DNA from: Thalia democratica
Taxonomy: Eukaryota
Length of the DNA: 64,000 nucleotides
NCBI GenBank assembly: GCA_965202585.1
Contig: OZ241829.1
Span: 73,408,001-73,472,000 of the forward strand
Reading direction: 5' to 3'
Within the stretch, counting starts at the first letter, position 1; each line of letters opens with the position of its first letter. Both the position numbers and the translations under genes were made by a program. Under the pieces are notes generated by a model, which saw only the letters and a list, made by a program, of their open reading frames with translations, searched no databases and was not told where the DNA came from. Of the stretch, positions 1,158 to 63,545 are shown piece by piece.

Positions 1158-1300
1158 TATTATGACGTCACAAGTAACACGAAAAACTCTTATGACGTCA
1201 TAATTTACTTTAGCTTCACAAGCCGAATCTCAAAGCGACTTCACCAACAGGATTTGAAGTCAGAGACATAACTATTAAACTATTCAAATTATTTTAAAAG
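1158..1300. promoter_or_regulatory. X module (degenerate)
   Basis: TGACGTCA at 1163 and 1193, followed by GCTTCAC...AAAGCGACTTCACC, homologous to the other X copies. Confidence 0.55.
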
Positions 1301-2080
1301 ATTGTAAAAATTATCAAAGTTTGCTCTTTGTGAAACAAACATAAATTATTCGAAATTTTTAAATGAGATACCTCTCGAAACAGACAACCTATCCAGTGGA
1401 GTTGTAGACTGGTCAACAAAAAGAGTATAAGCTCATAAGAAGTATACAAAACAGTCACCTTGAAATAAACGGAAACAATTGGCGGCTGAAAGACACCAGG
1501 TTTGATATCGAAGACAATTAAATCACAAAGAGTGGACGGGCAAGGGTATCATTGGCGACAACAAATACATTAGTAAATAAGATTTTCTTATTTGCCGATC
1601 ATATATATGAACGATTGTATTATTTCCTTGGAACGAAAAGACATAAAAATTTGTAAGCACTGTTTACATATTAAGATGGTGCTTACCTTTGGTTCTTGTT
1701 TGTTTTACTATTTGCCGCTGCGATTTAAACTACGAAGTAAGAAAGCAGGTGCACGACTTTTATTGATAAACACATGCAACATAAGTTTGTCTGTTTACAC
1801 TAAATGTAGGACCACCCGAAAGCGAAATATCTACTGATCATCCAACAAATTTTATCCAGCTACCTTTTACTGAAACTAGAATGTTTTTATAGTTGATTGA
1901 ATGGATTTATGATTCGGGTGAAGTATAATGAACGTGAAACAAATATTTGAGTACAGCACGTACAAATATTCTTTAGTTTACATCTTTTAACTAATACTTA
2001 GGATAAAACATGATTAGTAGAGTAGATTTCAATGTATTGTTTGATAAAAAAAAAACTAGAGGATTAATCTGACATATGAT

Positions 2081-2734
2081 ATGGGTATGAGTCAAATATG
2101 CACGAAGGGACACTTTTCCACAAAAGGTCACTTTTGAACGAAGACGCTTTTGCACGATAAGTCACTTTTGTACAAAAACATTTTAGCACGTGTTGAACTT
2201 TTTTTTTCCTTTTTTTTTTGATTTTAATTTTTAATGTATTTTATTTTTACTATCACTATTACCCTTAACCTTAACCTCAGTCGGTAAATTCTTTTTTTTA
2301 TTAATTAGTATTTAAAGTTAAATTTTTAGCTTATAAGTTTTTTATTTATTATTATTTTTATTTTTATTGTCATTATTTCACCTAGCCCTTACCCTCAGCC
2401 GGTTTTTTTTTACTTTTTTTTTATTACTTTTTTTTTCTTATTTTTTTTTAATAATAGATTTTATTAGCTATTCTTTTATTCTTTTGCTAGCACTGTTACC
2501 CCTAACCCTTACCCCTTGGTTAGTAACCTCTTTTTATTCTTTTTGTTATTTTATTAATTATGTTTCATGTATTTGTATTATTTTTTTTTTTGTTTTTTTT
2601 GACTCTCGAGCAAAAATTACCCTTTATGCAGAAGTGACCCTCCTTGCAAAAGTTTCTTGGTTCAAAAGTGTCCCTTCGTGCATATTTGATCATTTGTACA
2701 AAAGTGTATTCGTGAATATTCAAACCGTTCCCAT
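2081..2734. mobile_element. Non-autonomous element, ATGGG...CCCAT ends, CGTGCAAAA family
   Basis: Inverted ends with TCAAATATGCACGAAGGGACACTTTT on both sides; T-rich core with TAACCC-like motifs. Confidence 0.7.
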
Positions 2735-2782
2735 ATAGTATAGTAATACAATAATTTTAAATTATTAATGTATATAACTCAC

Positions 2783-2905
2783 AGGTGTTTTGGCTGTGTT
2801 TTCCTCGAGAAATTTCAACTCCTGGTGAGTTCATATTTCCGTGATGTTAGCTTGAAAGTTTGTAGCCTTTCATTCTTAAAACCCTGATATTTGAACTCCG
2901 TGCAA
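2783..2905 (-). other. Candidate non-coding exon (S1 family)
   Basis: Minus strand TTTTAACAG acceptor and GTGAGT donor; shares the TCAAGCT(A/G)ACATCA core with other S1 exons; stops in all three frames. Confidence 0.5.
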
Positions 2906-3320
2906 CTGTTAAAACATTAAAGTTTAGTTATTACTTTTATACGAAGTATAACTTGAAAAAGTAATAGTTGACTAACAAAATTCACAAATAAGGTACGATA
3001 TTAACTACTACTTACACTTTTACTTACTAAAATGTACACTTCCACTATTGTTTAATGATCACTACATGACGTCAATCTAATTTTTCGAGCTCCTTCCTTT
3101 GGCTCTTTAAAGTTTTAAATTTACTTAATAGGAAGTACAACTAACTTTAAAGATAACAACAGTCTATAATACTTTAAAGTGTTCAAGTATAGTCAATTTT
3201 TCCTTTATAATAATTTATTCTAGAAGTACTTTTCATAGTTTTACTTGGTTCACAATAGCAACCAAAAAAAAGCATTTTTTCAATCTAAGTTCTAACAATA
3301 GCTTAAAACAAAGTTTAGCC

Positions 3321-3566
3321 CAGGGTTTTCAAAAGCGGGCCATAACAGCAAAGAGGTCAAAATGGAGAGGGGGCATGGGTAGTAAAAGGAACAAAGGTGC
3401 CATGGGACCATAGTTTAAAACTAACACAAGATATTCTAAGTTTTTGGAAAAAGTAAAAAAAAGGTTTTAATTTAAAGATAGTTTTTTAAGAACTCTTGTC
3501 GGAGAAGCCTTAGCTTTTTTGTTTCTTTAAAGGAAAGCCTTATAAAAAAACATTTGGGAAATCCTC
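3321..3566. mobile_element. hAT MITE
   Basis: CAGGGTTTTC / GGGAAATCCTC ends; 8-bp TSD GTTTAGCC / GTTTAGCT. Confidence 0.75.
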
Positions 3567-3909
3567 GTTTAGCTGAACAACAAACATGTTTTTTATTAGT
3601 TTTGTTTTACTTAGTTTTTATTTTATTTTCAGTATATTCTTTTAAATCTCATCTAACCATTATACTTTGTTAAAAGTTGTGTTTGACACGCTGATGTTTA
3701 AACTTTTGTACTTTATTTTATAGTTATTTTCAAAAAAAAATAATTATGTGATGATCAGACTTAATTTTTTTTTTGGTATTTAAAATTAAAAAATTGAAAA
3801 TTTGGAAAATTTTTACATTAAACGCGTTTAAGTTTTTTACAATAAGCAAAATAACAACAAAATTCACAGCACTGTTTGCACAAAGGAAAATAAATGAACA
3901 GCGAAAAAC

Positions 3910-4029
3910 TATTATGACGTCACTACTAATCAAGTTTATTTGACGTCACGATTCACTTATGGCTTCACCAGCCAAAGCCTGACGCGAAATCACCGATTGG
4001 CTTCAAAGTCAAGATGAGTTAGTTTAGAG
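3910..4029. promoter_or_regulatory. X module interrupted by a hAT insertion
   Basis: TGACGTCA at 3915 and 3941, then GCTTCACCAGCC...GCGAAATCACCG; homology stops at CAGGGTTTCCC (4030). Confidence 0.65.
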
Positions 4030-4140
4030 CAGGGTTTCCCAAACTCATTTACTAAATCGCCCCCTTTTCAGTAATTTGAAAAAATATCGCCCCCCACGAT
4101 TGTACAAAGTAGTTTTTCTTTTTAGTACAAACTTTTGAGA
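4030..4140. mobile_element. hAT-type left end
   Basis: CAGGGTTTCCCAAACT after GTTTAGAG; no matching right end found. Confidence 0.5.
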
Positions 4141-5605
4141 TAAAAAAAAACTGTGTTCGAAATGTAATTTAGTCTAGTACTTCTTATGCACGCACTTTGG
4201 TGTTCAAAGTAGTTTACAGGGCTTTACAAAATAATACACAGTTATTATCTTAGAAGCCCAGTAAAGTGTATAAAATACTTAAATATTAAAAAGCCTTGTG
4301 TAATTTGTAATCAATCCTGTGTAAATATGAACTGTTTTGAAACTAATGAAACTTTTAGGTCAGTGGTAGACAACTTTTGTAGTGAGCAACTCATATTTAC
4401 TAACAAACCCTTTCTACTTTCAACTCGTTAAAAAATGTAATTGCGGGCTGCATGATTTAAAGAAATAAAAAATAAGAATATTTAAAAAACTTGAGCAAAA
4501 TTGTAATAAAATTATTTAGTATTATTGTGATCTAGGAAATACTATTGTGAACTGAAAACGAAATAAAAGTGTATTTCAAAATAGTAAGTATCAAAAAACT
4601 AAAACTGTAACAACCTGAACCAAGAAAATTTTTAAACAAACTTCAAAGAATATTAACGTGGAAAATTTTAACATAAAATGATGTGATATGAATAATACAA
4701 AAGATGTTATTATGGAGTACATGAATATCAAGTACATAAATATGATTAAGCCTTCTCTCAGAAAAATATCTTGCCAGAGCCGCAACCAATCAATGGAAAA
4801 CAATTGTTGCAATACGGAATACGTAAGATTCTAAAACAAACTTTCAAAACAGTATACGATAATTAAATAACAAATTTTTTTTAACCAATCTATTTGGTCG
4901 TTTACATAAAAATAACGATAGGTAACTAAAGACAGTATTTTACTGAAGTGAAAACAACGTCAAGACACAAAAATTGAACGTTTAAAATAAACAAAACAGT
5001 CAACTGAACAGACTTACTATAAAATCTGAAGTTTGTTGTGAATAATCTAGAGAACGTGGTCGTGGTACAGGAAGTGAAATAGCAACCCACAAATTTAATA
5101 AATTGAATCAACAGTTAGCAGTAAATCAGAACAGTTTAATGAACGATGTATCATATTTATGTAAGACTTTTCGAATTATATCACTCACCGGAAATGTGAA
5201 ACTCATCAGTATAAAAGTCATAAAACATTTTTTCTTTGACATCGAAATACCTAAGACTGCTATAAGTTTTATACATTGTTTATTAAAATATACTACATTT
5301 GACATGCTAATGGACCACATTTTATGACTAGCTAAATCAGAATTACACGAGTAAGTTAATGATATTTTTCCGTATTGTTTCGTAGCAACCCTAAAGGTTG
5401 TTTTAACTAACAGAATAACAAACATTTTACTGTTATGAAAAATGTATAACTATGGTAGAAAAGTTTCTAGAAACTTCTAGGTTACTAAAATATAATGAAG
5501 TTATCACGGTAGAGGTTGTTTTACACAATAAAAAACAAAACATGAGCACGAAAATGCTGGACCGGAAAACTAAATAAAAAATTAACAGTAGAACAAGGTA
5601 CTGAG

Positions 5606-5970
5606 ACGGGTCAAAAATGCACCGAGCAAAACTTTCCGCGTATTTCATTTTATTAGGTTTCAATTTTGCACGGGTGTCAATTTTATACGATTGTCACCAC
5701 TGTATGGAGTCACTTTTTACCGATATCAATTTTACAAGGCGTCAGATTTTACAGCTGTAAATTTTGCAAGGAGTCACTTTTGCACGGGTGACATTTTTTT
5801 CAATAAGTCACTTATGCAAGACGTCAATTTTTTATGGTTGTCAATTTGCATGAAGTCTAGAAACTCTCTTTACTTGTCTAAAAAAAATTTTACGAAATTT
5901 AAGAAAGCAAAATTTACATGGTGCAAAATTAACCTCTTTACAAAACTGACTACACGTGCAAATATGACCC
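5606..5970. mobile_element. CGTGCAAAA-family element
   Basis: GGGTCAAAAATGCAC left end, CGTGCAAATATGACCC right end; paralogs at 14351 and 45150. Confidence 0.6.
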
Positions 5971-6183: not shown

Positions 6184-6278
6184 TTGGAGTTTTTGCTAGG
6201 TTCGCAATTTTCAGCATTGATGTCAGCCTAAGAGGTCGTTTCTCGTTTTTCTTTCTCAAAAGTAGCATCTCCGTCCAA
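6184..6278 (-). other. Candidate non-coding exon (S1 family), 95 nt
   Basis: Minus strand TTTTTTCAACAG|TTGGACGG...CTCCAA|GTAAGT. Confidence 0.6.
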
Positions 6279-8734: not shown

Positions 8735-10300
8735 AAACTTAACCCTCAAACTGGGAAGCTCGAAGGTCGTAGCATGAGTTGTGGTATGAATACTCAAAGT
8801 GTCAGTAATAAAAGAAAAACTTTTATTGTAAGGAACGAGTTTCTTCTTTTAAGGTTGACATTGCAACTTTTAAAGAACACTCGTTGCTGGTCTACGATAA
8901 ATAGAGAAAACTATTTTAACTTTCTATAGTAACATAAAAATGCAGATCACGGAATGGAAAACTGCGACCCGCGATAATATAAATGTGACCCAAAAAACTA
9001 ATCACAAATCAAATTTACGTTTTCTGTAAAAAAATAATAGCTTGAATTTATTTCAGTATGCTTTTTTATTGTTTACAATAATGAGCATAAGCAATCATTT
9101 GTTTTTTTTAAATTATGAGTTTGTTACAAATTTAACTGAGGTTTGATAAGGTTTCTACTTTAGCTGAAGTTCGACGTGACATCGAACCAACATGTGCCAA
9201 ATATTAAAGATACAGTCGGAGTTCGACATCTCAATTGTCATTGCTATTATTCTCTTAATGTTAGGTAAATTTAAAAGACTTGTATCGCGGTACGGAATGA
9301 CCACTTACAAAATAAAGAACTATTGTGACATCACAAAGTCCGCAGCGAAATTACCGTAAAGCTTTATAGTCAAAGATACAATCATATTAAGCAATTTCAA
9401 ATGGATTTAAGAATTCTTCATGTGTTGAAAAACAAACTCAAACAATGCATTTCAACAAGAATCATTGAACGCAATTTGTATTGTGAAGGCAAACGATAGC
9501 TGGCTTAAAGGAAAACATTGCAACTCTTATGGTACACACTTTGCTGGTTTACAGTAAGTAAGAGAATTTTTTTTCAATTTTTAATGGTGTGATAAGAATG
9601 TAGTTCACGGAATGGAAAACTGTGACCCGCGATAATATAAATGTGACCGAAAAAACTAATCAAAAATTAAATTGGTCTCTTTGTAAAAAATGACGGCTTG
9701 AATTTATTGCAATTCGCTTTTTTATTGTTTACAATAGTGAGCATAAGCGATCATTTATTTCGTTAGGTCATGAATTTGTTACAAACTCAACTGAGGTATA
9801 AAGAGATCGCTAATATAAATGAAGTTTGACGTGACATCGAACGAATACGTGCCAGTTCGACATCTCAATTGTCATTGCTATTTTTTCTCTTAATAAATAG
9901 TTAATTTAAAAGACTCGTAACGCGGTACGGAATGACCACTTAGAAAATATAGAGCTACTATGACGTCACCAGTAGTGCAAAAAAAACGTGACATCGCAAT
10001 TCATTTTCGCTTTACAAATCAAAGTCCGAAGCGAAATCACCGTAAAGCTTAATAGTCAACTATACAATCATATTAAGCCATTTCAAATGGCTGTAAAAAT
10101 TCTTCATTTGTTGAAAAACAAACTCAAGCATTGCACTTTAACAAGACTCATTGAACCCAATTTGTATTGTGAAGGCAAACGATTGCTGGCTTAAAGGTTA
10201 ACATTGCAACTCTTATGGAACACACTTTGTTGGTCTACGGTAAATTAGAAAAAGTTATTCTAACTTTCTACGGAGTTTCATAGGAGTTTTTCGGCTTTTT
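8735..10300. repeat. Three tandem X-containing subrepeats (~640 bp period)
   Basis: AACATTGCAACT...GCTGGT(C/T)TAC and CGGAATGGAAAACTG(C/T)GACCCGCGATAATATAAATGTGACC recur; copy B has two units. Confidence 0.8.
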
Positions 10301-10704: not shown

Positions 10705-10917
10705 CTGTAAGAAAATACTTAATTATATAAACTGACTTTAAGTTTAAGTGAGTTAGGGGAAATCAGTTAATATTTTAAAAATTTCTAACAAGAACACCAC
10801 ACGTCACCACTGGCACTGACAAAATCTTACCTAGATCATTTTAGCTTCTGTGCACCACAAAACACTTTTTGTATACCACTTGGTGTAGTTAAGAAAACAT
10901 ACAAAAAATGCACTAAC

Positions 10918-11039
10918 CTTGCATCTGCAGCAGCAATTTCAGTCTGCGAGGGATCCATTTCATCGACCACCTCTGTAGCGCCTTCAAGTGGCTCGTCTGG
11001 TTTCTGGATGTCGCCGTTCATGTCAGTTGCAACTTTCAT
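10918..11039 (-). CDS. Possible small acidic protein exon MKVATDMNGDIQKPDEPLEGATEVVDEMDPSQTEIAAADA
   Basis: GC-rich; acceptor TTCTAACAG at 11057, donor GCAAG|GTTAGT; frame kept in the paralog at 40335-40462; no family recognised. Confidence 0.3.
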
Positions 11040-11504
11040 ACCACCCTTCAGATAGACTGTTAGAAATCATTTATTTTAAAGAACTTACTACAAATTTAAA
11101 ACAAAAATAATAATTTATTTTATATAGCCTTGGCTATAGGTTACGGTTTTGCTGTTCAGACAAATACAATAACTTTTAAATGCAATCAGTCCTCGTTATA
11201 AGTATCTTTACTCAAAATTGAAATTTAATTAACTTAAGTTGAAATTTAAATACTTTTTGATCAAATTACAGTTTTAGTTTTGTTCATTGCTTAATTAAAT
11301 AAAATTGTATACAAAAAATAGTAGGTAAAGTAGTATTGTGTTTTAAAATAAATTAATTTTTATCAGTATTATAATTCAATAATTTCAATAATAAAAACTA
11401 ATTAAATTAAAGGTTGCAGTTTAGTTTTGTTTACGAAATCGCATGACTTGAAATTTCACAAAACTTTTAACGTTCAACGGAAAGTCGGCTTAGAAAACAA
11501 AGAG

Positions 11505-11810
11505 TCAATGTGTCATTTCAATAAAAAATAAATAAAAAGTCTCGTAACAGTTCACTTTCGCTTCACCAGCAAAGTTCGAAGCGAATTCACCGAAAGACTT
11601 AGAAATCAAAGATACATTCATTTCAAGCCATCTTAAATGGCTGTAAAATTAAGCAAATTACGAGGATAAACAAGAATACTCTTCGACTAGACACTCTGAA
11701 CCCAATATGTGCTGTGAAAGCGAGTGTTTTCCGCACTCGGCCTGTGATGTAATACTTAAATACAGACTTGTTTGTGACGTAAAAATTTGAGAGCTTCTTT
11801 TTTCTATGTG
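11505..11810. promoter_or_regulatory. X module
   Basis: Stem TTCGCTTC/GAAGCGAA, AGCCAT-N5-ATGGCT, right degenerate CRE pair and TTTGAGAG-T6. Confidence 0.65.
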
Positions 11811-13684
11811 TTGTAAGTATGATTTTTAGTGTTGATAAACTTTAAGGTTTTTTCTAGATACGTTTTAGTTGATTTCTACATATAGGTGGTTTAAATAGTC
11901 TTCAAAATGTGCACAGAAATTACGGAAGAAATGTGTTGTTATATTTTAAGCTTTTAAAAATTCACTGACACTTTACGAAGCTTATCGTGGATTCATTTAC
12001 TGTTTATTGTCGTAAGAGATATTTGTAACATTTTTTTTCCATAAAAGATCACCAATAGCAAATTAAAGTATTTATCTTCAATTATCTAACAATTCAGAAT
12101 ATAAGAAATTCGACAAATTCATTGTTAATAGCTTCTTTATTTTCACATAGTTTTAAGAATAAATTGCATCTGTTATCCAGTCATGCACAAATTTACAAAA
12201 CACTATTTAACTTATTAAACCAAGGATGACCACAGCTCAGTCAAAAAAGTGGTTAGTTTTTACGAGAAGATAAAAATAAAATAATATCAGCTATATAAAT
12301 AAGAAAAGAAAATTATTTTGTTTTTGCAACGTGCACAAAACAAGCAAGTTGATAATTTTGTTGTTAATGATCTTCGACTTATGAAAAAAATAAAAACAAT
12401 GAAATTAAAACTTGATGAGTTGATTGAAGTAACCATTGGTGTAAAAAAACATTGGCATAACAATAATTTCAGTGCGAGTATAAAGCCAAGAAAAAGCTTG
12501 TAATTTCGTAAGCACTTAGCTTGTAGTAAATGGATGCGAACGTAGTAAGCTAAAAATGGTGTTTAACAAAAGAAGCAACACGTAAATGTTGCAGGTAATA
12601 ACATTAAAATTACTTTAGCATTTATTATAAAAATAGGTCTTTAGCGATGTCAATATGCTATCAAAATAATCTTCTTTTCGTGAAGACAGAAAATTTGGTC
12701 GCTAACTGAGAATTTGCAGTTTGTACCAGCACTTTCCTCTTTTAAATCTAAGAAAACAGTCAAATCAATATAATGTTTAATACAAAGTCTGTTTTAGGCT
12801 TAGATCTGTTATTGCATACTTTCAATTAGGGTGGTGTTACAGATGAAATGTCACTTTTTTGTTTGTTGACGATCCAAAAAAAGTACTGATTTGGAGTAAG
12901 AGATTATTATTGAAGACTCCAGATCAAACATACGCACACTAGGTTAAATATTTTATAATTTATTATTTTAACAGATCGCTCGTTTTTTATATATAAGGAG
13001 TATTTTCATTGAGTGACCACAAATAGTTGTGAAACATGGTTATGATAAAAGGTTTGTCTCAACGTTCTAAGTACTAAAACGAATTAAGTAACATTTTTGT
13101 ATAGATCACAATATATTTTATGTAAGGGCAATTAAATAACACTAAACCGTGGCAACTCTGGTTGTCAGTAACAAACATAGAATGAATGAAGGTATATTTT
13201 ACTCAGCTTTCCTGATTAATTTGATAGAATTTCGTCATTGAAAATAAGCTGCAAGCTAATTATTAAATTGCCAAAGTATCGAAAGTCTTAAAGGCTACCT
13301 GAAGCTAGAAATACCGAAAGACCACAAAAAAAAAGGCTAACGTGTTTATTAAACTTATTCGCTGCTTCTGGCAGAGAAGACACGAGCCAGACTTGAAAAT
13401 AATAATAAACCAGGTGAAATAATGTCCAAATTAAAAGGAACAAATAACCAAACCACAAGCTCAGAGACACATAACCCAACGAGCCAACGCCAGTCACGGA
13501 TAGCCTGACAACGATGTTTGTTATCGGATACAATGAAGATACTGTAACACAGTAATGAGGTGAGTTGTTGCTCATCAGCCACCAAAACGTTATTTATAAT
13601 GATATAATTTTCTTTAAAAATACTGTCAAAAAACATAATGTAGTCAATTTACAGTCTGGTATACTCTTTAACACAATACCTAAC

Positions 13685-13760
13685 AGATGACGCCATAAAC
13701 CATTTGTTACCTTCAAACAGGCTTGTGAGAAACTCATAAAACTGTTACAACCTGAACCAA
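13685..13760. promoter_or_regulatory. R module
   Basis: AGATGACGCCAT...CCTTCAAACAGGCTTGTGAGAAACTCATAAAACTGTTACAACCTGAAC; paralogs at 43105 and 44255. Confidence 0.55.
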
Positions 13761-14350
13761 AAACAATTAAAGACACCAAAAAATATTAACATACAAAAAT
13801 TTAAAATAAAATAATACAATATCAATGAAACTATTATGGAGAGCATCAATATAAAGTACATGAATGATATAGATTATAGAAGTATGAATAAGCCTGCTCA
13901 CAGAAAAAAATATTGCCAGAGCCGCAACCTATCAACGGTAAACAAAGTCAGCATACATTTGTTGACTTTACGGAATACGTAAGATCCTAAACAAACTTCA
14001 AAACAGTTTACAACAATTTGATCACAAAATAATTTTAAAACCAAACTATTTGGTTGTTTACATAAAATAACGATAGGCAACTAAAGACAGTATTTTACTG
14101 AAGTGAAAGCAACGTCAAGATACAAAAACTGAACGTTTGAAATGAACAAAACTCTAGCAGTCAACTTAAAAGACTCAGTATAAAATCTATAACTTTTTGT
14201 GAATAATCAAGATAACGTAGTCGCTTTTGTTGAAACAGTAAGTAAATACCAACCCACAAAATTTAATAAATGGAATCAACAGTTAACAGCGAATAAAAAA
14301 GTTTAAGGAACGATCATATTTATGTAATGCTTTTTGAATCAGTAGCTGGG

Positions 14351-51898: not shown

Positions 51899-52472
51899 TA
51901 ACTGTTTACTTACTCAAAGTTTATTTTTAAAAATAGTTGCTAACAAAATTAGTTGTAATGGTTTGCTGAAATGTATTTTACTTGTTTGTTCAATAATTTT
52001 TTTTATATTGAACCTTGTTTTAAGTTTTTGTTTAATACATGTAGTACTATAAAATTATTTGGCAAAAAATAATTTAAAGTAAAATTTAAATGAAACTGAA
52101 ATTCAATTTAGATAACAATTTGATTATTATTAGTGAGAGCGCTCCTTATTTTATTTGTATAAACTTAAGTTTAGAAAATCCTGCCTTATTAAATAATGTT
52201 TTGCATCGACTGACAACTAGATGCAAAAAGTAGTGCGCATAGTAGTTTTTTGAAAAACTATAGGAGGGACGATTGTTGTTTAAATTTTATAAATGTGATT
52301 GTTACCTAATTTGGCTTTAGAAGTCTTGATAAAGATCAAAGCTACACAAATGTACTTAACTTCATTTGTTTAAGATCATTTAGGACAAAACATCTTAAGT
52401 AGTAATTCTCAGTGAGCTTAACAAATGAGATATGTTAGCTTACGCAAAGGTTTTATAAATTTCAAAACTTAC

Positions 52473-52563
52473 TTGGAGTGTTTGCATCATCAACGGCATC
52501 CTTCACCATTGATGTCAGCTTGAGAGATTGTTGATTCCTTCCACAAAAACAAGCTGCCAACCT
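52473..52563 (-). other. Candidate non-coding exon (S1), 91 nt
   Basis: TTTAACAG acceptor, GTAAGT donor. Confidence 0.6.
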
Positions 52564-53359
52564 CTGTTAAATTGTTGAAAAATTAACATTTGAAATATTT
52601 ATTTTAATATAGGTGATAACTTTTCCTTTAGTTTAATAATTACGAAGTATCTACCACTAATGTATAACTATTTCAGCTTAATAAATAAATTTAAAACTAG
52701 AGATTTTCTTTTAATTAATATGCAGTACATTTCAAAACCACACACGTCACCACTACTTACAACATACAAATGTAATCTAAGAACATCTTGCTTAAAACCT
52801 TCAGTTGTTTTTGAAAGGTATTTTAATTTAACAGTACGTGACACAAAATATTTTTTATAATTCTGAATTAATAATCGTAGATTTATTTTAACAATATGTG
52901 TAAGTCTAATAAAGTAGAGGTAATTTAAAAAACTCTATAATGCTAAAAATGAAACTTAATACTTTCATTGTATGATATAATTAACGATTGAATGGTAATT
53001 AAGTACTACTTTAATTTTAGTTTGACTAAGCAGCTGCAGTAAAACATGTAATATTTTGAATAAAAAACCTATTTCTACATATTTATTTAGCTACTTTACA
53101 ATATTTGTAAAAACATCGTGTTTAAAAGTATAAATGAAATATTAACTATTAATGTAAAAATTCTAATTACAATGACTAGATTGCAAAATATTTCCGTGTT
53201 GCATTAACAGATTATTATAAAAATATTTTTTCAATTGTTGTAGTTAAACAAATAATGCAGATAAAACATCGAGAAACTTGTCTGACGATACTAAAACATT
53301 TATCCCGTTATTTTTCTACAGTTTTGAATTAAAAGCAAACTAAAAAATCTCAAGAAATA

Positions 53360-53755
53360 CTTTTTTTAAAGCCGCGCGTAAAAAAGATGGCGACAATACT
53401 TGAGCGCAAAAAGTTTGCGATTTTTTAACTTAAAACTGCTGCTTCACAAAACTTAAGTAACGTCACAAAACTTCAGCTGAAAAAAAAAATTGTTACGTCA
53501 CAAGCGGCTTTTACCTCAAGAACCGAAGCGTTTTAGTTTCACATAAAGCATGTTGGGCCGCGCTCGGCAGGCCTAAAAATATTTGGAATTAGATAAACCA
53601 GCAATGAGATAATTGTGTGTGTTGACACTTTGAATGTTACTCATACTGTGAAGGCGTTCAATCGTTGGTGACGTCACTAAAAAGTCAATCTGATATATGA
53701 CGCAAGAAAAAAATGTGAGAGAGTTTTTTACGCTGCCTCGGTCTACCTGCTGTTC
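53360..53755. promoter_or_regulatory. X module (X3)
   Basis: GCCGCGCG, AAGATGGCG at 53384, TGACGTCA at 53669. Confidence 0.7.
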
Positions 53756-54236
53756 GGCAATTTTAATTTTTTATATGATTAAAAGATAATAATAAACATA
53801 GCAATTAAGATGAAAATGAATATGTAGTCAAGATAAAATAAATAAAACTATTAATGGTACTAAATTTGAATCCGTACGCAGGCTAATATAAAAAATACAA
53901 AAATTAAGTTTAAGTATAATTTTTGGCTAATAAAAATATTTATCAAAAGCAATTTTAAGTATGTATTTTGGCTAATAAAAACAAATATAACTATAATCGT
54001 TAAACTTGAATAACAGAAGTGTGAGATAGATTTATGTGACGCAGATAGCAAAACGAGTGAAATTATATAAATTTAATCCTCAATGGATCAACCATACTAC
54101 AATATATTACACTGGACGAGCCGACGACGGTAACTATTACGTTGTCGGTGTGTAGGAATCAAAAAATATATATATAATCGGATTACCATCCTCCTCACAG
54201 CGAGGAATACCTTCCCTTCCCCGATGGCTGTCATAA

Positions 54237-54476
54237 ATGGATGTCAGAAAAGCATGGGTCGTCACAGAGTGACACTTTAGCACGTAGTGACACTCTGGCA
54301 CGAAGTGACACTTTATCGCGGAGTGACACTTTGGCACGGATAGACCATTTACCAAGGGTCGTCATTTAAGAACGAAGCAACACTAAATCACGAAGTGACA
54401 CTTTAACACGGAGTGGCACTCTGGCACGGTGTGAAACTTTGGCTCAAATTGACATTTTAGCTCGGTTTCACTCCAT
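54237..54476. mobile_element. GTGACACTTT-repeat element
   Basis: Paralog of 24459-24698. Confidence 0.6.
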
Positions 54477-55704
54477 TTTAACACTTATATCGTTTAAAAA
54501 ACGATTATGTTCAATTTGACAAAAACATACCGAATGCTTATGTAATAATAAAAAATTGATTAGTATCTCAAAACAAAAGAAACTCAATATTAAAATAATA
54601 TTTTGTGTAAAAGTGTCACAATTTTAAACTAAGGAATCGAAGTATATATATAAACAATATTTCAAACAATTTGACTTAGAAACTTTTAAAGCACATAAGG
54701 GACAACGATAAGGTATGCTTTTGAACCGAAACTTAAATTACAAAATTATTAGTTGTGTTACACCTAAATTGAGCCATATAAATATCATGTTTATGTTCAA
54801 GTAATTTCAAATACTATCTTAATAATACTTAGTTACTACAAAAATAATACTACAATAAATGTGTTTTTTCTGAATCGAAATTTATTGATGTACCACCTAT
54901 TGTATGTAAACTAAGTATATAAAAAAAAGCGGTGTAAGTAGAAAATATTACTATAAATCTAAATCAATAGTAAGCAAAAATAACTTATGAGTGCAAAATA
55001 AATTTTAATGAAATAACTTATGTACAATGACAATAAATTAACTAACCAGATGGTTCATGCTAATGTTCCATTTTCATAGTTTCTGACCACAAAAGACGTA
55101 GTTGATTTTTTTTTGTTGACCCGTCAACTTGACTGTTGGAATAAAATTAGTTGATTAATTTTAAATTTATATAAGCTTTTTTATTGACATTTTAGAACTT
55201 ATAGAACTACATTATGATTGTGGATCGTAAGCTGGTTGTTTGCTCCAACGGTTAAAATTAGAAGTTAACAAACGAAATTATTTTTTCAGACTTTTTGTTA
55301 ATAGTAGTAGTACAGATAACTTAAAATAATCCATTTTTAATAACAAAAATTTTGTTTTAAATTTTAAACAGAAAAAAGTTTGGAATGTTTATTTATTGAT
55401 ATCAGCTAGCACAACGACAAAGTAAAGTTGCTTAATACCAAAACAAAATATCACATAAATTTTACATCTGTATAATAATTTATGAATGTTTAGTTAAAAA
55501 TAATTACGTCATAAAGAGTCAAGTGTAAAAGGTGGTATAAAATTTAAATTAGAATTAAATAAATTAATTAATTAAGGCAAAATTGATTGTAGTGTCACAT
55601 TTAAACGTTTAATCGGACTTGCGAGTATTTATGACATCACGACAGAACTTTAAATCAGAGTTGGGAGAATTAGTGACATCATGTCAGAACCTTTAAACAG
55701 GAAA

Positions 55705-56134
55705 ATGGGTCAAATATGTACAAAGACAAAATTGAACCAGTTACTAAATTGCACGAGAGAAAAAATTGCTAGAGGGCACAAAATTGCATGGAAATTCTTT
55801 TGCACGAAGACAAGTTTGCACGAGGGGACAAAGTTGCACGAAGACAATTTTGAACCAAGGGTCAATTTTGCAGGAGAGTCATTTTGCGAGAGAGTTAAAC
55901 TGATATCAAAAAAAATAAAACTGAAAGATAAATTAATAAAAAAAATTCAAGAAAAAAGGGTTATGGGTAACAGTGATAGTAAAATAGAATAAAACTAACA
56001 AAATACTTATTAAAAAAGTTCAACCCGTGCAAAATTGTTTTTGTGCAAAAGTATCTTCGTGTATTTTTGTGCCCTAATACAAGTTTTTCTCCTCGTGCAA
56101 TTTCGTTAGCTCGTACAAAATTGACAGATACCAT
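55705..56134. mobile_element. CGTGCAAAA-family element
   Basis: ATGGGTCAAATATG...TTGACAGATACCAT. Confidence 0.65.
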
Positions 56135-56164
56135 TCAAACAGACTTAAAAGTAATTTTAACATA

Positions 56165-56270
56165 ACATTGGAACCTCAAATAGGCTTGTGAGCAAGTGTG
56201 ACGTCACATTAGAACCTTCAAAATGAGTGATTATGACGTCACAACAGAATTTTTAATCAGGCTTGTGAGT
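56165..56270. promoter_or_regulatory. Tandem R modules
   Basis: TGACGTCA at 56199 and 56234 with GAACCTTCAAA. Confidence 0.55.
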
Positions 56271-57119
56271 AATTCAACTCACAAAATTGGTACGACCTGA
56301 AGTAATGACATTCAAAAAAATCATCAATGAATATGAACATTGAACATAGATAATATAAACATAAATAACATGAATACAAAAAACATGCATGGTATCAAAA
56401 TATGAATAAGCGTGCTCATAGAAAAATGAATCCCTGCTAGAACTGCAACCACTGAGGAGAAACAAAGTCAGTATTATCTTGTTGCATTATTTAGTTGCAA
56501 AATGGAATTCATAAGATTCACAATCAAAGCTTTCTAACGAGTTCTCGATTCAATGATTATAAAAGACAAAGAAATGAGTTGAGATAACTGTTTCAAGCAA
56601 GCTTATGTTTAAAATCTCTGTATTTGAAAAATTTAAGAAAAAAAATCTTCTTTTTTTTGTTTGCAAATGCTGCTTGCTTACTAATGTTACAATTTTAGAC
56701 TTAGACAAGTAGTTGATTCAAAATATAAAAAGGATTATTTTAAAATAGAAGAAAATTTGTTGTTGTTAATATTATTATTGTTGTTTTTTTTCTTGACCGA
56801 TGAATAAATTTTACAGTTCTTATCTTTATATTTTCATCTATAAAATTCAAGTACATTTTTATATACGACGTTCAGTTAATTTTCGTTTAGTTTACTTTTC
56901 TTTCATTTCGCTTAATTAATTGTTTTATTACTAAAGAATTAAATTTTTAAATGAAGACAAAATTATGTGTAGTAGCTCGTAGAAATATTTATAACCATGT
57001 GGTATACGACTAGATAACCGAAATATTCTTTCGTACACCAGGTCCTTAGAACAAACATTTTGAGCGCTTATCTTTATCGTTTAATAAACAATATAGTTAT
57101 ATTTTTGGACAAATATCAA

Positions 57120-57430
57120 AGGTGGACAACTAAAAGTCATAATCACGTACAAGTCTGTTTAAAGTTTATAGTGTGACGTCACAATTACTCACAAGTCTGC
57201 TTGAAGGTTTTTGTGCTTGAATAAAAGGACTTATAAAGGTATGTGCACATTATACTTAGCTAGACTATTTAAAACGATTCCTTAAAAAAACAAATAATTA
57301 TGCTTTATCACTCCATGAGGAACTTGTTTTTTCACAAGCTTAAAAGAAGCAAACTTGAACTAGACTGTTAGAGTGAGTTACATAAAATAGACCGCAGTAC
57401 TCTACAAGCTGTTGTAATAACAGGAGGAAT
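57120..57430. promoter_or_regulatory. X module (X5)
   Basis: Paralog of 27300; TGACGTCA at 57174. Confidence 0.4.
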
Positions 57431-58422
57431 TTGTAAAACAAAAATACAAAAATAGTATATTAATATATCTAGTATGAAAGGATCTACTCTTTTTTTTTAC
57501 TTTACTAAATATCAGGACCTGAATTTCATCTTAATTTTTTTAACTTTGATATATGCATGCATTAATTTTAGAGTGTTTTACTAACTCACTGTTTGGATAT
57601 TGCTAATAAAAATTTTTATTATCTCGGCTTACTAATTACATAACAAACTATGCTAACAGTTTTCTAGATTTAATTATATAAAATATCATTCGAAATAAAT
57701 AAAAATTAGTAAACAAAAGTGTTATAACTTTCTTAATCGGTTTTTAAAAAATAACATAAAAACATAAATAAACACTTTTCAAAAGACAACGACTTTAGTA
57801 TAGATTCAGGACTCAAAATATTAGTAAGTAAAGTATTATATCAGTAAGCCTTTTGGCGATGAGCTGCAAAAGGGCCAAAGGGGCTACAAGGAAGTGCTTA
57901 GACACGCTTACGAAAATTTTTAAACTAGAAATATTAAGAACAAAAAAAAGTTTAAAGCTTTCAAACTAACAGTGGATATTTTTAGGCTCGAAATGAGTGG
58001 AAGCAGTATTTATTTAGTTTTTAAAAAGGGGATTTAGAAAACGAGTTTGGGAAGTTTTACCCTACAAAAATATTGTTAACATAGTTTAGTTAGGCGCAGT
58101 GCTAGTTAGTGTACACAACAGTGTGCACTAATTCACAATTGAGTGCATTATTTCCGCATATTAGACTATTTATAATCTCAGAGGATGAGAGGTGATTGCT
58201 TTTTTAAGTTCTTAAAAGAGAGCGTTTTGAAAAACAAAGTGAAATTCTTATACAGTTCAGATGAGTACAACTTTTGTAATCTTTATTATTTAACTTAAAT
58301 TGAGGGTAAAACTTCATAAGTAGTAGTTTTTAATGTACTTACCTAATCAAAGACAAAGTCATGCAACAAAAAATTTAGTTGTAATAACTTATAAAGTACT
58401 TATTATAGATATGAAAATTTAC

Positions 58423-58525
58423 TTGTAGTGCCTTGGTTTCCCTTCCACTTAATTGCGTTTCTCAGCACTGATGTTAAAGGGTTGTTGCTCGTTTTTCTTA
58501 CTTGAAAATACCAACCACCATCAAA
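58423..58525 (-). other. Candidate non-coding exon (S1 variant), 103 nt
   Basis: TTTTTTAACAG acceptor, GTAAAT donor. Confidence 0.45.
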
Positions 58526-59374
58526 CTGTTAAAAAAAAGAAAATTAGTTATGTATTTAAATTAAGATTTTAGCTCTAAGTTTGCTTCATAAATAGTGTAG
58601 CATTTTCGTTTATACTTATAGTCAAAGTTAAGTTTATTTATCTTTGTTAGACTACTAAAGATACTTTTCAGGTTTTTTTGAAACAAACACTAAAAAAATA
58701 CATTAAAGTATTGTAAAACCTTACTAAATAGTTAGTTTTCATTACTTAAAAAAGTTATACAAAAAAAGAGTGATAATTAAATTGCTATCACACGATCAAT
58801 TTGTAGTAAAAATAAATGGTTTAAGAAAACTCACTCAGAAGAGTAAGCTTTGTAAGAGTACCTGCTGTTAGTAGTTTATTTTTAAACGAAGAACACTTTT
58901 CGACTTTCCTTTTTTTATAATTTTCAACAATAATCTGAACAAATTAAATTGATTTTACTTTAAGCTGAATTTTTTTGAAATCTCAATAAATGTTCACATT
59001 CTAAAACTCTTAATTGTCGAAAACTTATGGAGATCGATTTGCTATCTTGAAGCTCAAATATTGTTGTTTTATGTAAAAGTGAAAAAACTCAAGTACTTAT
59101 TGAAAATATTTTTTTGCTTAAAAAACAAAAAACAAAACGGTTAATACAAATGTAGATAAACGTGTTAAATAATAACATTTGACTTTTTAAAAACGGTTTT
59201 GATTTAGAATTCAAAAAACATATGGACCTAAAAATGATGATTTTTTTTGCTAAGGTTATTATAGTTATTAATTTAAATCGCGTTTTTTGGTTAATATGCG
59301 TATTCAGTGAAAATGTTACTATATTTTCGTCAAAACAAAAAACATGCTGTCAGCACTGTGGTAGCTAAAATAAC

Positions 59375-59545
59375 AAAAAATTGCATGTTAACAGCATATA
59401 AAAGAAATTCGTGCAACAGAAAACTACATGTGACGTCATAATACATATTAAATGACGTCACAAGCTGACTTTAGGAGTCAAGGATTCCTAGACTTAAAGT
59501 TTTGAGAATATTATAGTCGTGTTAGAGACGAGTTTTGCAAATATA
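59375..59545. promoter_or_regulatory. X module (X2), truncated
   Basis: TGACGTCA at 59431 and 59453. Confidence 0.6.
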
Positions 59546-59781
59546 TACTGACAATATCTAATTTTTTTTGTTAAATTTCCTGACATTTCCTGACTTTTGT
59601 CATTTTTTTAAGTTTTTCCTGACTTTTCCTGATTTCCAGACTTTACCTGACCTTGTGCCCTGCTGTGGTAAATTGTCATAACTATTAGTTCTAAACTAAA
59701 CTAATTAACTAAAGACGAAATCATACAACAAAAAGTAATTTTTATAATTATCACAATTTGAATATAAGTATAAAAATATAC

Positions 59782-59886
59782 TTTAGTGTTCCATGGACTT
59801 AATTCCGAACTAAGATGTATTCTTGAGATAGATTGATGAAGTACTCGCTTCAGCGTGATGGATAGGTTGTTCTATACTCTGTCCAA
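59782..59886 (-). other. Candidate non-coding exon (S1 variant)
   Basis: TTTTAACAG acceptor; donor degenerated to GTATAT. Confidence 0.4.
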
Positions 59887-60104
59887 CTGTTAAAATATAA
59901 GTTTTACTTATTCTGTTTAATGTAGATTTGAGGTTTATATCTGTAGAATTTTGTCTGGTACAAAGAATAGTCTAGCATTTGAAGCTATAATCGTTTGTCA
60001 TTTTAGATTGTGATTATCACATTTAAAATCACTTTTTATTTTATCTTAAAAAATAGCTGGCTTAAAATATTCTAAAAAGTGATATATATATTTGTAAGCT
60101 CAGC

Positions 60105-60570
60105 TGAAGTCTGGAGACTAAAGTCAACCTTAAAAATATATATAACAACGTCAGTTACAATAAAGCAGTAATTAGCAAATAACTGTTATTATATTCGTAC
60201 AAGTTTATTTCGTTCGGACGTTTTCTGTCAAACATATTCACAAACTTAAAATAAAAGTTTATTGAACAAAAACGAAAATGCACAAAAAGTTTTAGTTTAA
60301 CTACCTGAGTGTACGAAAACCTTTCAGTCGTCGAGTCGTACACGACATAAAGTGTTTTGAACTGTTAACAAGTATTTATAGTCAAGCTAGATGACTTTAA
60401 AAATTCATCAGTTAGAAGTAATAAGAAGCAAGGTTAAAATGATATTACAACTTAGAAATATTTATTTATTAAAAGCACTATATTGTTGGAGTTAGTTAGT
60501 GACGTCATAATATACTACAACTGTTTTTATGATGAATAAGTTTGAGAGTTGCCTTTTTCTTTTCTTTTTT
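60105..60570. promoter_or_regulatory. X module (X4)
   Basis: AGTCAAGCTAGATGACT; TGACGTCA at 60500; TTTGAGAG-T run. Confidence 0.5.
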
Positions 60571-61969
60571 CACGGTTTTCAAATTTCAATACAATTTATA
60601 GTACTTTGAATCTTTCTTTACAGATTGGTTGTTACTATAGGTTGCAAATAAGTTACAATATCAATTAGTTTTTTTAAATGTTCAAACATAAATTGTACTT
60701 TTTACAGTGTTGTGCAGGTTGTTGTTTAAATCTTCACAGTTAGCTTGTTTTTGATAGCAAGGCATGTTTTAAATAGTATCCAATAAGGGTATGATTCAGC
60801 GCTTAAGTATAATTGACATACTTCGTTTAACCTTCAGAGAACATAAATAGATAAGGTCACGCAAGTAGACAAAATTTAGCAACTCTGCCTGTTAGGACCT
60901 TCACAAATGAATCAGCAGATTGTAAGTAGCTCTATCATTGTTTACAACAACGTATATAGTCAATCATTTAGTTAATCCAAAAATGCGGGTAGCGAATGTC
61001 GTCAATCAAGAGACGTGAACACCTAACTAACACGTAAAACTTTCAAATTTCCAATTAAAACTCGCAAGTTAACTCAAAATGTACATTATCCCCTTTTTCT
61101 ATTGAAATATTTCAATCTTTTTTTTAAACAATGAATACAATTATCCATATATTTATAGATTTGTTACAACGCTTTTAATCGATGATTAGGCCGAGGGTTA
61201 ACCGGGAGGTGGGGAAAGAAATGTGGACATAGAATCACTAAAAGTCAATTTTCGACTCGTGTTTTTAACTGATCCTTCTTTTTAAAAAGCAGATTTGTAT
61301 TTACTAATGGTTTATTTCATTTTGAAGAACTAATTTTATGAAGACAAAGGAAAACAAAGTGTTTATTTATATACACTTAATGTGAAACCTACAAATGTAT
61401 AGGATATAAATCCAATTTTTACGGTGTTCAGCAGAGTTTTGGATAAATAGATTCGTGTGGCGCAAATGACTTAACACGAGAAAAGAAGCGGGATGAGTGA
61501 AAATGACATAAAGCAGAACGTCGTAACTCTAAGGAGCAGGCTAGAAATCCGGTTGATCGTATTCAGAAACCAAAATTATTGCTATATAACTTTCATTCAA
61601 CACCGTTTGTCAACCGTGACACGTGTTTTATGAATACATCATTGTGTGGTAACAATCAAAAACTCTCTCCCGCTTCTTCGCAGTGAGTAAAGGTTAGGTG
61701 TAAAGTATTAAGAACTGCCCGACCAACAGACTACAACGGCATCAGAGTGAAAATAAATAAAAACATTAATTTAAATTTAGTGAATAGAAAGATTTTGGGC
61801 ATCAAAGTGAAAAATAAATATGCATAAACAGAAAGTTCGTAAATACGAAGAATTTCAACATGAAAATATAAACAAACCCTACAAACAAAGCACCACATAA
61901 TAAAAGAAGGGGGCACAAAGTCAACATAAGGTTGTTACATTAAGACTGTCAACACAGATACCTCAATAA

Positions 61970-62030
61970 AACTGACAGATGACGTCATTAGCCATTATGA
62001 CGTCACTCCTTCAAACAGAACTGTGAACAT
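61970..62030 (-). promoter_or_regulatory. R module
   Basis: TGACGTCA at 61980 and 61998, then CCTTCAAACAG. Confidence 0.6.
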
Positions 62031-63449
62031 TGTGTAAGAATAAGCTTTTTATTTGCGCTTAGGTGAACTACATGGTCACAAAATTGTTATGACCTGAGCT
62101 GTTGACATTCAAACATTAATGATTATGAGATCAAAAATATCAATGTAAAGAATATAAACGATATCAGACAAAACTACGTAAATAAAAACAATACTAATGA
62201 AATTTAAACTTGAATAATCTCTTAATAATAAGTCCGTGACGTGTGAAAGGGACATTAGGGAATACCTAGAGACGAGAAACTCAAAAAATATATACTAGAG
62301 TCTATATTGAAATGCAATAAATGTTAAACAAAACTTGAGACAAGGACTATTCAAAAGTTTGAAAAATAGTTTCAAAAATAAGTTTATATTATGTTAACAA
62401 TTATAGGTTTCATCAAAAAATACTCTAATTAATTAATAAGTAGTTCAACTAAAATTAGCATTCATGCAAAAATAAAAATAAACAAACAATAAAAGTAAAA
62501 TAAACAATAAGTAAAAGTAAATTGCAACAAATTAGACAAAAATATTTTTCAGATTTAATTTTTTTAAAACTTAATAGTTATAATCTAAGCGTTTCAGATT
62601 CTTTTTTTGTACAAAAATTTAGGTTTTATTTATACAAACAACAGTGTGTTTATAAATATAATCTTTATAAGTTGTTATAAGTCTTGTTTGTCGCTTATTC
62701 TATTTTACTTATTGTGTTTTTTTTACTATTAGTTTTCTACGGAGGCTTATCTTCGTTGAATAACCAATTAAATTATAGTTATGTAATTATATACAATTAG
62801 TTTATCTCTAGTTAGTTTTTCCTGATGTCTTATTTTATTAGTTGAGTATTTTTTGATCAAACATATAACTGTTTAATTACTCAAAGTTTATTTTTAAAGT
62901 TAGTTGCTAAAAAAAGTAATTTTAATGGTTCGCTGAAAGGTATTTTACTTGTTTGCTCAATAATATTTTTTTTAATTAATCTTGTTTTAAGTTTTTTTTT
63001 TATATCTGTAGTACTATAAAGTATATGACAAAAAAATGAAAGTACAATTTAAAGGAAATTTGAAACTCAATATAGATAACAATTTGATTATAATTAGTGA
63101 GAGCGTTTTTTTTTAGTTTGTAAAAAAGCTTGTTTATGAAGTTAAGTTTAGGAAACCCTGCCCTGTTGAACAATATTCTGCATCGAATGACAATTAAATG
63201 CAAAAAGTAGGACGCATAGTAGTTTTTGAAAAACTATAGGGGGGACGATTGCTGTTCAACTTTCTTAGAAGTGGTTGTTACGAAATTAGACCTTGGAAGT
63301 CCTGATAAAGATAAAAGCTACACAAATGTACTTAACTTCATTTGAATAATATCATTTAGGATAAAACATCTTGAGTAGTAATTCTCAGTAAGCTAAATTA
63401 ATGAAATATATTAGCTTACACAGCATGTTTTACAAATATGAAAGCTCAC

Positions 63450-63545
63450 TTGGAGTGTTTGCTTTGTTCCGTCAACTGCATCCTCCAACATTGATGTCAG
63501 CTTGAGAGATTGTTGATTCCTTCCACAAAAACAAGCTGCCATCCT
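63450..63545 (-). other. Candidate non-coding exon (S1), 96 nt
   Basis: TTTAACAG acceptor, GTGAGC donor. Confidence 0.6.

Follow-up and report, generated by a model that had tools for sequence, protein, structure and literature searches.

A nested same-strand array of candidate CRE-driven, spliced non-coding units in the tunicate Thalia democratica

A 64,000-nt stretch of Thalia democratica contig OZ241829.1 (73,408,001–73,472,000, forward strand; here "the window", to whose positions all coordinates refer) contains, within an AT-rich tunicate genome, a repeatedly duplicated same-strand block that spans at least 62 kb. Judged from its sequence, this block could well be made up of amplified minus-strand transcription units that are CRE-driven, spliced and non-coding, a reading that we put forward tentatively and at slightly less than even chance. 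Constraint is limited to the CRE octamers and the junctions of an exon-like module, S1, which makes the locus look like an array of promoter-driven spliced ncRNAs. An earlier note on this DNA had described such an array; what it observed is largely real and was confirmed in part.

In the proposed scheme, the window would belong to an array whose non-coding transcription units all lie on one strand and were amplified hierarchically, with an ancestral unit of ~3–4 kb and, in minus-strand order, the elements X, leader exon, intron, S1 and R. X would be a promoter-like module with extended CRE pairs either side of a short palindrome and its A/T block, with a TATA box plus a YY1 motif further on in one X subfamily. 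Next would be a very short leader exon, then an intron of 0.3–3 kb, then S1, a putative exon of ~95–105 nt whose content may change freely while acceptor and donor are kept; 1.2–2.5 kb past S1, R would place another CRE pair beside a conserved AG|GT junction. CREB/ATF-type bZIP factors may sit on the CRE pairs, where they would drive or gate transcription, and the RNA would be spliced without coding for protein. The promoter function of X, the direction of transcription, the splicing and the role of the RNA are what we infer here from the letters of the DNA.

Module families and nested duplication

Iterated nhmmer searches of the window recovered 15 copies of X, 13 of S1 and 10 of R, all in one orientation, so the recurring same-strand modules of the earlier note are real. 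Self-similarity inside the window is direct nearly throughout and nested, leading from an old unit of ~3–4 kb to an 11-kb block and from there to a super-block of ~29.6 kb. The two super-blocks (~4.6–34.4 kb vs ~34.4–64 kb) are 83–85% identical and the 11-kb blocks inside them 76–85%, while the old sub-units within the 11-kb blocks can be aligned in their modules only. The ~20 recurrences of a ~3-kb unit proposed previously were not borne out as equal units with a regular period: S1 copies follow each other at 1.4–11.9 kb (median 3.9 kb), and the structure is hierarchical.

X is a dyad consisting of a CRE pair, ~90 nt, a central palindrome, 114–116 nt and a right-hand CRE. In its right half the short palindrome adjoins a TAAAAAT block, with the CRE 114–116 nt off, and each of the nine right halves has a T5–T12 run after TGAGAG. 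Extended CRE sites in X read TTR-TGACGTCA-YAA, and the boxes keep their order and spacing across four subfamilies. Full dyads were found at 11502–11801 (decayed CREs, palindrome 11626–11642), at its paralog 40954–41255 and at 47871–48153 (CREs 47884 and 48097). Left halves, for which nhmmer was combined with a CRE scan, lie at 1154–1323 (perfect CRE pair 1163/1193) and 3905–4036 (CRE pair 3915/3941). Further copies occupy 9312–9505 (partial), 9951–10191 (CRE 9961, palindrome 10076–10092), 37970–38174 (CRE 37979 and TTACGTCA) and 39704–39947 (CRE 39714), and the X' type is present at 19145–19332 (right half only, CRE 19276), 30625–30811 (CRE 30757, palindrome 30637–30653) and 60368–60556 (CRE 60500). 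The CRE scan also identified a pair at 29657–29686 with TATATAT between the sites, unmatched by the X model and 1 kb upstream (minus sense) of the S1 copy 28679–28577, as well as its paralog at 59431–59460.

In the three b-type copies of X, the minus strand shows CRE-like sites, a TATA box, the YY1 consensus GCCGCCATCTT ~32 nt beyond it and then a GTATTT donor, and all of these point towards S1. The core-promoter-like copy at 23586–23947 has its right CRE at 23887, a CRE-like site at 23711–23720, TATAAAA near 23655, the YY1 consensus at 23618–23628 and the donor near 23592. Its counterparts lie at 34688–35066 (CRE-like sites, right CRE 35006, TATA-like 34753–34763, YY1-like 34720–34730, donor 34688–34698) and 53354–53729 (right CRE 53669, YY1-like 53384–53394, donor 53354–53364). 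A CREB/ATF-dependent promoter has a full CRE at most ~150 bp upstream of the start site, plus a TATA box; in b-type X the CRE, TATA and YY1 motifs stand in promoter-like order as a matter of sequence layout. This TATA/YY1 layout is restricted to b-type X, is in effect one event, and showed no alignment with c-type units.

The 13 S1 copies, delimited by nhmmer and their junctions on the minus strand, have predicted exon lengths of 91–123 nt in all three phases, with stops and frameshifts. They comprise the divergent copy 2783–2905 (123 nt, GTGAGT donor) and those at 6184–6278 (95 nt), 15122–15215 (94 nt), 18574–18677 (104 nt), 22608–22702 (95 nt), 28577–28679 (103 nt), 30048–30147 (100 nt), 33795–33890 (96 nt), 45703–45797 (95 nt), 52473–52563 (91 nt), 58423–58525 (103 nt), 59782–59886 (105 nt) and 63450–63545 (96 nt, or 104 nt with the upstream AG at 63553). 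A CRE-type word, TGACATCA, lies inside S1.

Conservation of R, likewise on the minus strand, peaks exactly at the junction TTCAG|GTYGTAAC. CRE pairs are present in the copies at 43101–43253 (43115/43134), 50153–50434 (50242/50260), 61891–62161 (61980/61998) and, as R', 56172–56360 (56199/56234). The copy at 20797–21039 combines CRE 20887 and TTACGTCA with a conserved TTAG|GTCATAAC junction, that at 32256–32537 has CRE 32345, the CRE is decayed at 13675–13826, and fragments remain at 4601–4677 (no CRE) and 44261–44386. The R' copy at 26351–26535 carries CREs 26365 and 26407, which fall where the copies of a 42-bp tandem repeat (26326–26422) join, an example of how CRE number rises by local tandem duplication.

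Constraint on CRE octamers and splice junctions

The CRE octamer TGACGTCA occurs 35 times in the window against 0.43 expected, a count reached by none of 100 shuffles. These sites form 26 clusters, of which nine hold two perfect octamers 18–42 bp apart and several others a perfect CRE plus a one-mismatch site. Counted as homologous groups, the independent sites number ~10–12 rather than 35, which is still far above chance. Among aligned copies the octamer was kept in 38 of 52 (0.73), compared with 0.42 for other central-CpG 8-mers of 50% GC and 0.31 for all 8-mers. ACGTCA was the most over-retained of 1406 hexamers (82/105 vs a base of 0.40, p ~2e-15, from paralog comparisons that are mutually non-independent), and no word family other than the CRE is over-retained at many separate loci. 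As judged from these comparisons, the CRE octamers are under constraint. CpG observed/expected is 0.98, so the CpGs of the CREs escape erosion by germline methylation.

The second signal is splicing-like. All 13 S1 copies have a TTYAACAG| acceptor and an AA|GT donor on the minus strand, and TTTYAACAG is found 16 times on that strand of the window vs three times on the other. Between subfamilies, S1 identity is 0.63 at the acceptor and 0.80 at the donor, compared with 0.39 in the exon body and 0.42–0.47 in the introns; body conservation thus matches that of introns and only the two junctions stand out, in agreement with the earlier claim that minus-strand splice sites persist. A further conserved block lies in the intron, 100–140 nt past the S1 donor (between-subfamily identity 0.57–0.66). 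S1 thus appears to behave like a non-coding exon.

Whole modules were not better conserved than spacers between alignable paralogs (X 0.828, R 0.797, S1 0.791, spacers 0.802), and in a four-way alignment of the 11-kb blocks long invariant runs were not above chance. Most of each unit therefore evolves neutrally. A strand asymmetry of substitutions was looked for between paralogs and none was found. Only CRE octamers and S1 junctions are over-conserved, the two kinds of signal on which selection is visible. The view that motifs persist while the rest diverges consequently stands for these two signals and fails for whole modules relative to spacers (0.79–0.83 vs 0.80); the paralog-alignment check that the earlier note had suggested gave the same split, with motifs above their flanks and whole modules not.

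That the locus is non-coding, as the earlier note had it, was upheld in each test applied. Open-frame spans around the CREs equal background, mismatches show no preference for any codon position where paralog pairs share an open frame, the ten longest ORFs contain no Pfam domain, and S1 occurs in three phases. A protein-coding family of short-exon genes was rejected, as there is no third-position bias, no domain, and frames are as in the background.

Alternative explanations

A possible though doubtful alternative is a decaying duplication relic: tandem copies derived from the 5', non-coding end of what was once a gene, which would now evolve neutrally and yield no useful spliced RNA, with the CREs retained as a cluster of bZIP sites acting as enhancer, chromatin element or factor sink, much as DXZ4-like macrosatellites serve CTCF and YY1. 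Whole modules as divergent as spacers, blocks without an excess of long invariant runs, over-retention at many separate loci of the CRE alone, and CRE number that grows locally through the 42-bp repeat would all be expected of such a relic. The searches of sequencing runs returned no RNA run containing the locus, which is also in line with it. S1 frames are broken in most copies, and 63450–63545 is the sole b-type copy with an open ATG frame, which fits a decayed first coding exon. However, acceptor and donor are the best-conserved columns between old S1 subfamilies while the body is unconserved, a pattern not easily accounted for without selection on splicing through much of the history of the family; in R, too, conservation is highest at an AG|GT junction.

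An array of alternative leaders, in which X, leader exon, S1 and R would form untranslated 5' ends spliced to common coding exons left of the window, is unlikely. All units face one way, every S1 copy has a strong donor, and the exons, like those of 5' UTRs, are free in their content. Such repeated one-direction units of promoter plus exon recall the protocadherin and UGT1A clusters, whose variable exons, however, are long, coding and provided with a donor only. S1 is short and non-coding and has both junctions (acceptor in 13/13), and each unit holds several exon-like pieces, so the protocadherin/UGT1A version offered earlier is a misfit. Moreover, the window contains no constant exon, the required ones would have to lie beyond its left edge, and at least 64 kb of diverging leaders would be unusual.

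One-stranded, repeated, non-coding units with kept splice sites, together with the conserved intron block past the S1 donor, are also what a small-RNA or piRNA precursor locus would offer, where introns or whole transcripts of the spliced units are processed as in SNORD116/115, C19MC or uni-strand piRNA clusters. Like SNORD116/SNORD115 (SNHG14) and C19MC, the array seems to consist of same-strand tandem units with exons kept for their splice sites only. It differs from them in that it has no conserved intron-embedded small RNA by Rfam or alifold, a CRE-rich promoter-like module seems to be present in every unit, and units are far more diverged and nested rather than uniform. An Rfam search of the window gave no match at the gathering threshold and none at E<=1, a tRNA search found none, the conserved intron block after S1 has no consensus structure, a sliding alifold scan of the 11-kb block returned nothing convincing and no strong conserved hairpin, and no convincing C/D-box pair was seen by eye. 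piRNA clusters produce abundant 24–31-nt RNAs, usually from transposon fragments, whereas transposon insertions and fragments are few in this locus. The small-RNA-host reading of the earlier note thus found no support, and we regard it as quite improbable.

Less probable again is that X is a small gene with an RNA polymerase III external promoter, the left CRE pair being the distal element and the palindrome plus TAAAAAT the proximal element and TATA. CRE/ATF sites do occur upstream of 7SL and EBER genes, and the preserved box order and spacing, the fixed distance from palindrome to CRE and the T-run of the right halves would suit a proposed RNA of ~130–150 nt that stops at the conserved T-run behind GAGAG. 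This presumed RNA, however, has no conserved secondary structure and no Rfam match, the sequence between the boxes drifts freely, and the T-run could just as well be a start region rich in pyrimidines.

Finally, summed word depth over the unit is ~10–20x that of perfectly matching single-copy contigs and suggests further copies elsewhere, as pieces of a transposable element family might have, but such an origin is very improbable, as X, apart from the CRE palindrome, lacks terminal inverted repeats, ORFs and domains are absent, all copies are direct and tandem, and word depth is even across modules and spacers, indicating that whole blocks were copied and not separate mobile modules.

Macrosatellites and a wider role of the CRE

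The favoured reading, an array of CRE-driven spliced non-coding units, also invites comparison with macrosatellites. DXZ4 consists of 12–100 units, each of 3 kb, to which YY1 and CTCF bind (PMC3287207). DXZ4 and D4Z4 share with the array kb-scale, head-to-tail, mostly non-coding units, each with a promoter-like element and factor motifs. In contrast to macrosatellite homogeneity, however, the units found here are only 70–85% alike, irregular in length and hierarchical, and the selected motif is the CRE, with a YY1 motif in three units only.

In Ciona, the canonical CRE has no positional bias towards transcription starts (PMC1796609), so that equating CRE with promoter is an assumption for the array. 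A broader idea, which we consider unlikely, is that TGACGTCA in this tunicate would mark exons or transcribed units throughout the genome instead of being mainly a promoter element. The array would then be the non-coding extreme, in which nothing is kept by selection but splice junctions and words of the CRE type (TGACGTCA for X and R, TGACATCA for S1). If so, its units could be decoy or sponge exons for a splicing or chromatin factor that binds CRE words or, alternatively, precursors of unstructured small RNAs.

Nested duplication of the array

By self-comparison, most of the window (29% G+C; four ORFs of at least 100 aa in 64 kb) consists of direct same-strand duplication. There are two copies of a ~29.6-kb super-block, in which paired segments are, for example, 84.6% (22886-31382 vs 52650-61088) and 83.2% (10904-14339 vs 40321-43751) identical. 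Nested in the super-block are ~11-kb blocks (18453-29918; 29918-35600 and onward; 48914-59667; 59667 to the end) sharing 76-85% identity, and inside these are older sub-units, alignable in short modules only. Iterated nhmmer searches, seeded with the coordinates of the earlier note, recovered three recurrent module families in a single orientation: X (n=15), S1, a short exon-like segment (n=13), and R (n=10), following one another as X, S1, R on the minus strand. Successive S1 copies are 1.4-11.9 kb apart (median 3.9 kb). In the earlier note a unit of ~3 kb recurs some 20 times; the array of repeated units is real, and, given this spacing and the nested blocks, the description simplifies a nested duplication history.

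A MITE-like element at 180-440 and ~2075-2745 has a 17-bp subrepeat (TGCACGAAAGTCACTTT) in inverted arrays with CCCATATAGTATAG-type termini; these flank a core that is rich in A/T and contains degenerate CCCTAA strings resembling telomere repeats (2260-2530). Three minisatellites (24485-24687, 54268-54461, 14410-14705) share one word of 16-18 bp; a minisatellite of 18 bp in 11 copies occurs twice, as paralogs, and a young one (65 bp x 4.6, 98% identity) has a single-copy counterpart at 5664-5793. The short C-rich repeat at 21000-21600 reaches a summed word depth of ~4x10^5 in three DNA runs and is thus among the most abundant in this genome and its relative; the insert (~21148-21398) is confined to that copy of the 11-kb block, and similar GGCAGGGTTTCC(C)AAAC pieces lie at ~790-1080, 3310-3560 and 4020-4100 and after several S1 copies. 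The longest run invariant across all four 11-kb blocks (21 nt, TGCCCGACCAACAGACTACAA, 20623-20643), borderline against chance, sits between R and X', an X copy with the right half only.

Conservation of CRE octamers and splice junctions

The CRE octamer TGACGTCA occurs 35 times in the window vs 0.43 expected from shuffles, and these octamers reduce, in our own grouping, to about 10-12 homologous site groups. Modules had been expected to be better conserved than spacers. For whole modules this failed: identity over all alignable paralog pairs was 0.828 for X, 0.797 for R and 0.791 for S1, compared with 0.802 outside modules, and a four-way alignment of the 11-kb blocks had no more long invariant runs than a column identity of 68% predicts, so that by the earlier note's own comparison whole modules are unconstrained. 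For single motifs the expectation held. In 52 comparisons starting from a perfect TGACGTCA, the aligned paralog was perfect too in 38 (0.73); the corresponding fraction was 0.42 among other 8-mers that have 50% GC and a CpG in the middle, and 0.31 among 8-mers overall. In an unbiased scan of 1406 hexamers ACGTCA topped the list for over-retention (82/105 vs a base of 0.40); the pairs behind both counts are non-independent, the signal being drawn from many separate loci. The conserved site exceeds the octamer, as 67 of 70 half-site flanks have a pyrimidine first and mostly AA next, which makes a palindrome of ~14 bp, TTR-TGACGTCA-YAA, over the 35 sites; long palindromes centred on CRE were absent from the window. 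The comparison of paralogs within the window shows active maintenance of TGACGTCA outside coding sequence. Among variants with a single mismatch, TTACGTCA (9), TGATGTCA (6) and TGACATCA (5) are the most frequent.

CpG is not depleted in the window as a whole (observed/expected 0.98; GpC 1.23), so the locus has not been eroded by germline methylation; in tunicates with gene-body methylation, such a ratio would mark germline-unmethylated DNA.

For S1, twelve copies with 350-nt flanks were aligned and identity was scored solely between four subfamilies. It was 0.63 over the 20 nt that immediately precede the exon and 0.80 in the first 8 nt of the intron, vs 0.39 in the exon body, 0.42 in the upstream and 0.47 in the downstream intron. 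TTYAACAG/ and AA/GT (slash, junction) are kept in 13 of 13 copies, and TTTYAACAG is found 16 times on the minus strand vs three times on the plus strand, bearing out the claim that minus-strand splice sites persist. Generic splice-site word counts per strand and the strand asymmetry of substitutions were uninformative. The pattern is that of an exon under selection for splicing rather than for what it contains. The variant TGACATCA is also kept inside the exon, and a second conserved block (0.57-0.66) follows 100-140 nt after the donor. At the 5′ end of S1 exons of the b-type subfamily, AGGATGGC(G/A)GC (minus strand; 22692-22702, 33880-33890, 63535-63545) is similar to the YY1 consensus and points the other way from the YY1 motif of b-type X copies.

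In R, identity between subfamilies peaks (0.64-0.74) at the junction TTCAG/GTYGTAAC, which we read as a putative acceptor because the sequence after the AG makes a poor donor. A 42-bp unit is repeated 2.2-2.3 times at 26326-26422 and 55604-55697; its joints recreate TGACGTCA, and CRE number in the variant R' thus rose by local tandem duplication.

The main rival explanation is a decaying duplication that survives solely as a cluster of CRE binding sites. Modules no more conserved than their spacers would agree with it, while the conserved S1 junctions argue for more than binding sites, and we regard it as rather unlikely. An array of alternative leaders, whose common exons would lie outside the window, we regard as improbable.

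Module X, coding capacity and RNA structure

X is a dyad: a CRE pair and, ~90 nt on, a palindrome of 6 bp around a 5-nt loop (AGCCAT..ATGGCT, AGTCAT..ATGACT or GGCC..GGCC), adjoined by a TAAAAAT block; from the palindrome it is 114-116 nt to the next CRE, after which come a half-CRE, an A-rich block, TGAGAG and a T-run. In the three b-type copies, read on the minus strand, CRE-like sites are followed by a TATA box and, after ~32 nt, by a YY1 consensus (perfect at 23618-23628, GCCGCCATCTT), with a GTATTT donor ~25 nt beyond it, all directed at S1, 0.9 kb away. This is the predicted layout of a textbook core promoter, limited to one subfamily and effectively one event; homology between it and the c-type units, another subfamily, was looked for and no alignment was found. 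Mirror-image boxes on the right of X suggest possible divergent transcription. Two other candidates at X were rejected: a minus-strand exon within it (TTTTTACAG/.../GTGAAT), with AG in ~11 of 15 copies by our count and GTGAAT columns at 0.4-0.6, and a spliced-leader RNA gene on its right (GTAAGT donor and U-run, copy 11502), which is not conserved in other subfamilies.

The T-run could serve as the terminator of a Pol III-type gene. Both arms of the central palindrome do change together, the sole compensatory change in X, and an 8-bp stem after the left CRE has one-sided G-U changes only (our count from the alignment; suggestive at best). RNA structure is otherwise not conserved on either strand, with z-scores for the X core fold mostly between -0.1 and -1.3 on both strands and no conserved fold in the right half, which makes a Pol III gene very improbable. 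The small-RNA host proposed in the earlier note found no support: Rfam gave no match in the window, whether at its gathering threshold or relaxed to E<=1, ARAGORN gave no tRNA, the S1 intron block 100-140 nt after the donor had no consensus fold, and alifold, run in sliding windows over the 11-kb block, gave weak folds only, none conserved.

That the units are non-coding was confirmed within the window. The longest stop-free span around CREs has a median of 45 codons vs 47 at random positions, mismatches in open frames common to paralog pairs are flat over the three codon positions, and the ten longest ORFs matched no Pfam family at a credible score; a protein-coding family was rejected on these grounds. 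S1 exons (91-123 nt) are found in each of the three phases, and in most of them stops or frameshifts interrupt the frame that is open in their relatives. An acidic open frame (10944-11066 / 40244-40462), tried as an exon, proved to be an internally duplicated, frame-shifted piece.

Copy number and significance

Reads were placed on 18400-24399, and contig word depth was compared with summed depth. Perfectly matching contigs had a word depth of 41-56, against a summed depth of ~200-1100, which, although summed depth is not a copy number, suggests ~10-20 further unit copies at an identity of at least 90%. Modules and spacers were covered alike, which argues for the copying of entire blocks and not of individual mobile modules, and a transposon reading was rejected. 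The units also occur under a second organism label at ~92-94% identity. Three sequencing runs contain the locus, all DNA-like; one same-sample run has none of it. Little weight attaches to absence from RNA contigs, since exons this short would supply barely one twentieth of the words sampled.

The array is real, as are the excess of CRE octamers, the exon signature of S1 and the absence of coding capacity. Whatever concerns expression of the units, in all its aspects, we infer from sequence. The most economical reading, which we favor tentatively at somewhat below even chances, is an amplified family of minus-strand transcription units, spliced and non-coding and putatively driven by CRE. Literature searches for TGACGTCA with exons, and for tandem or clustered lncRNA, in tunicates found nothing relevant; among known systems, the macrosatellite DXZ4, made up of 3-kb units, binds YY1 and CTCF (PMC3287207). 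If untranscribed, the locus would be a segmental duplication of the ordinary kind, in which a conserved cluster of bZIP binding sites happens to lie. If transcribed, it would represent a large family of spliced, promoter-bearing non-coding RNAs specific to a tunicate lineage, in which selection acts solely on splice junctions and factor-binding words, and would offer a natural case for asking what keeps a non-coding gene alive.
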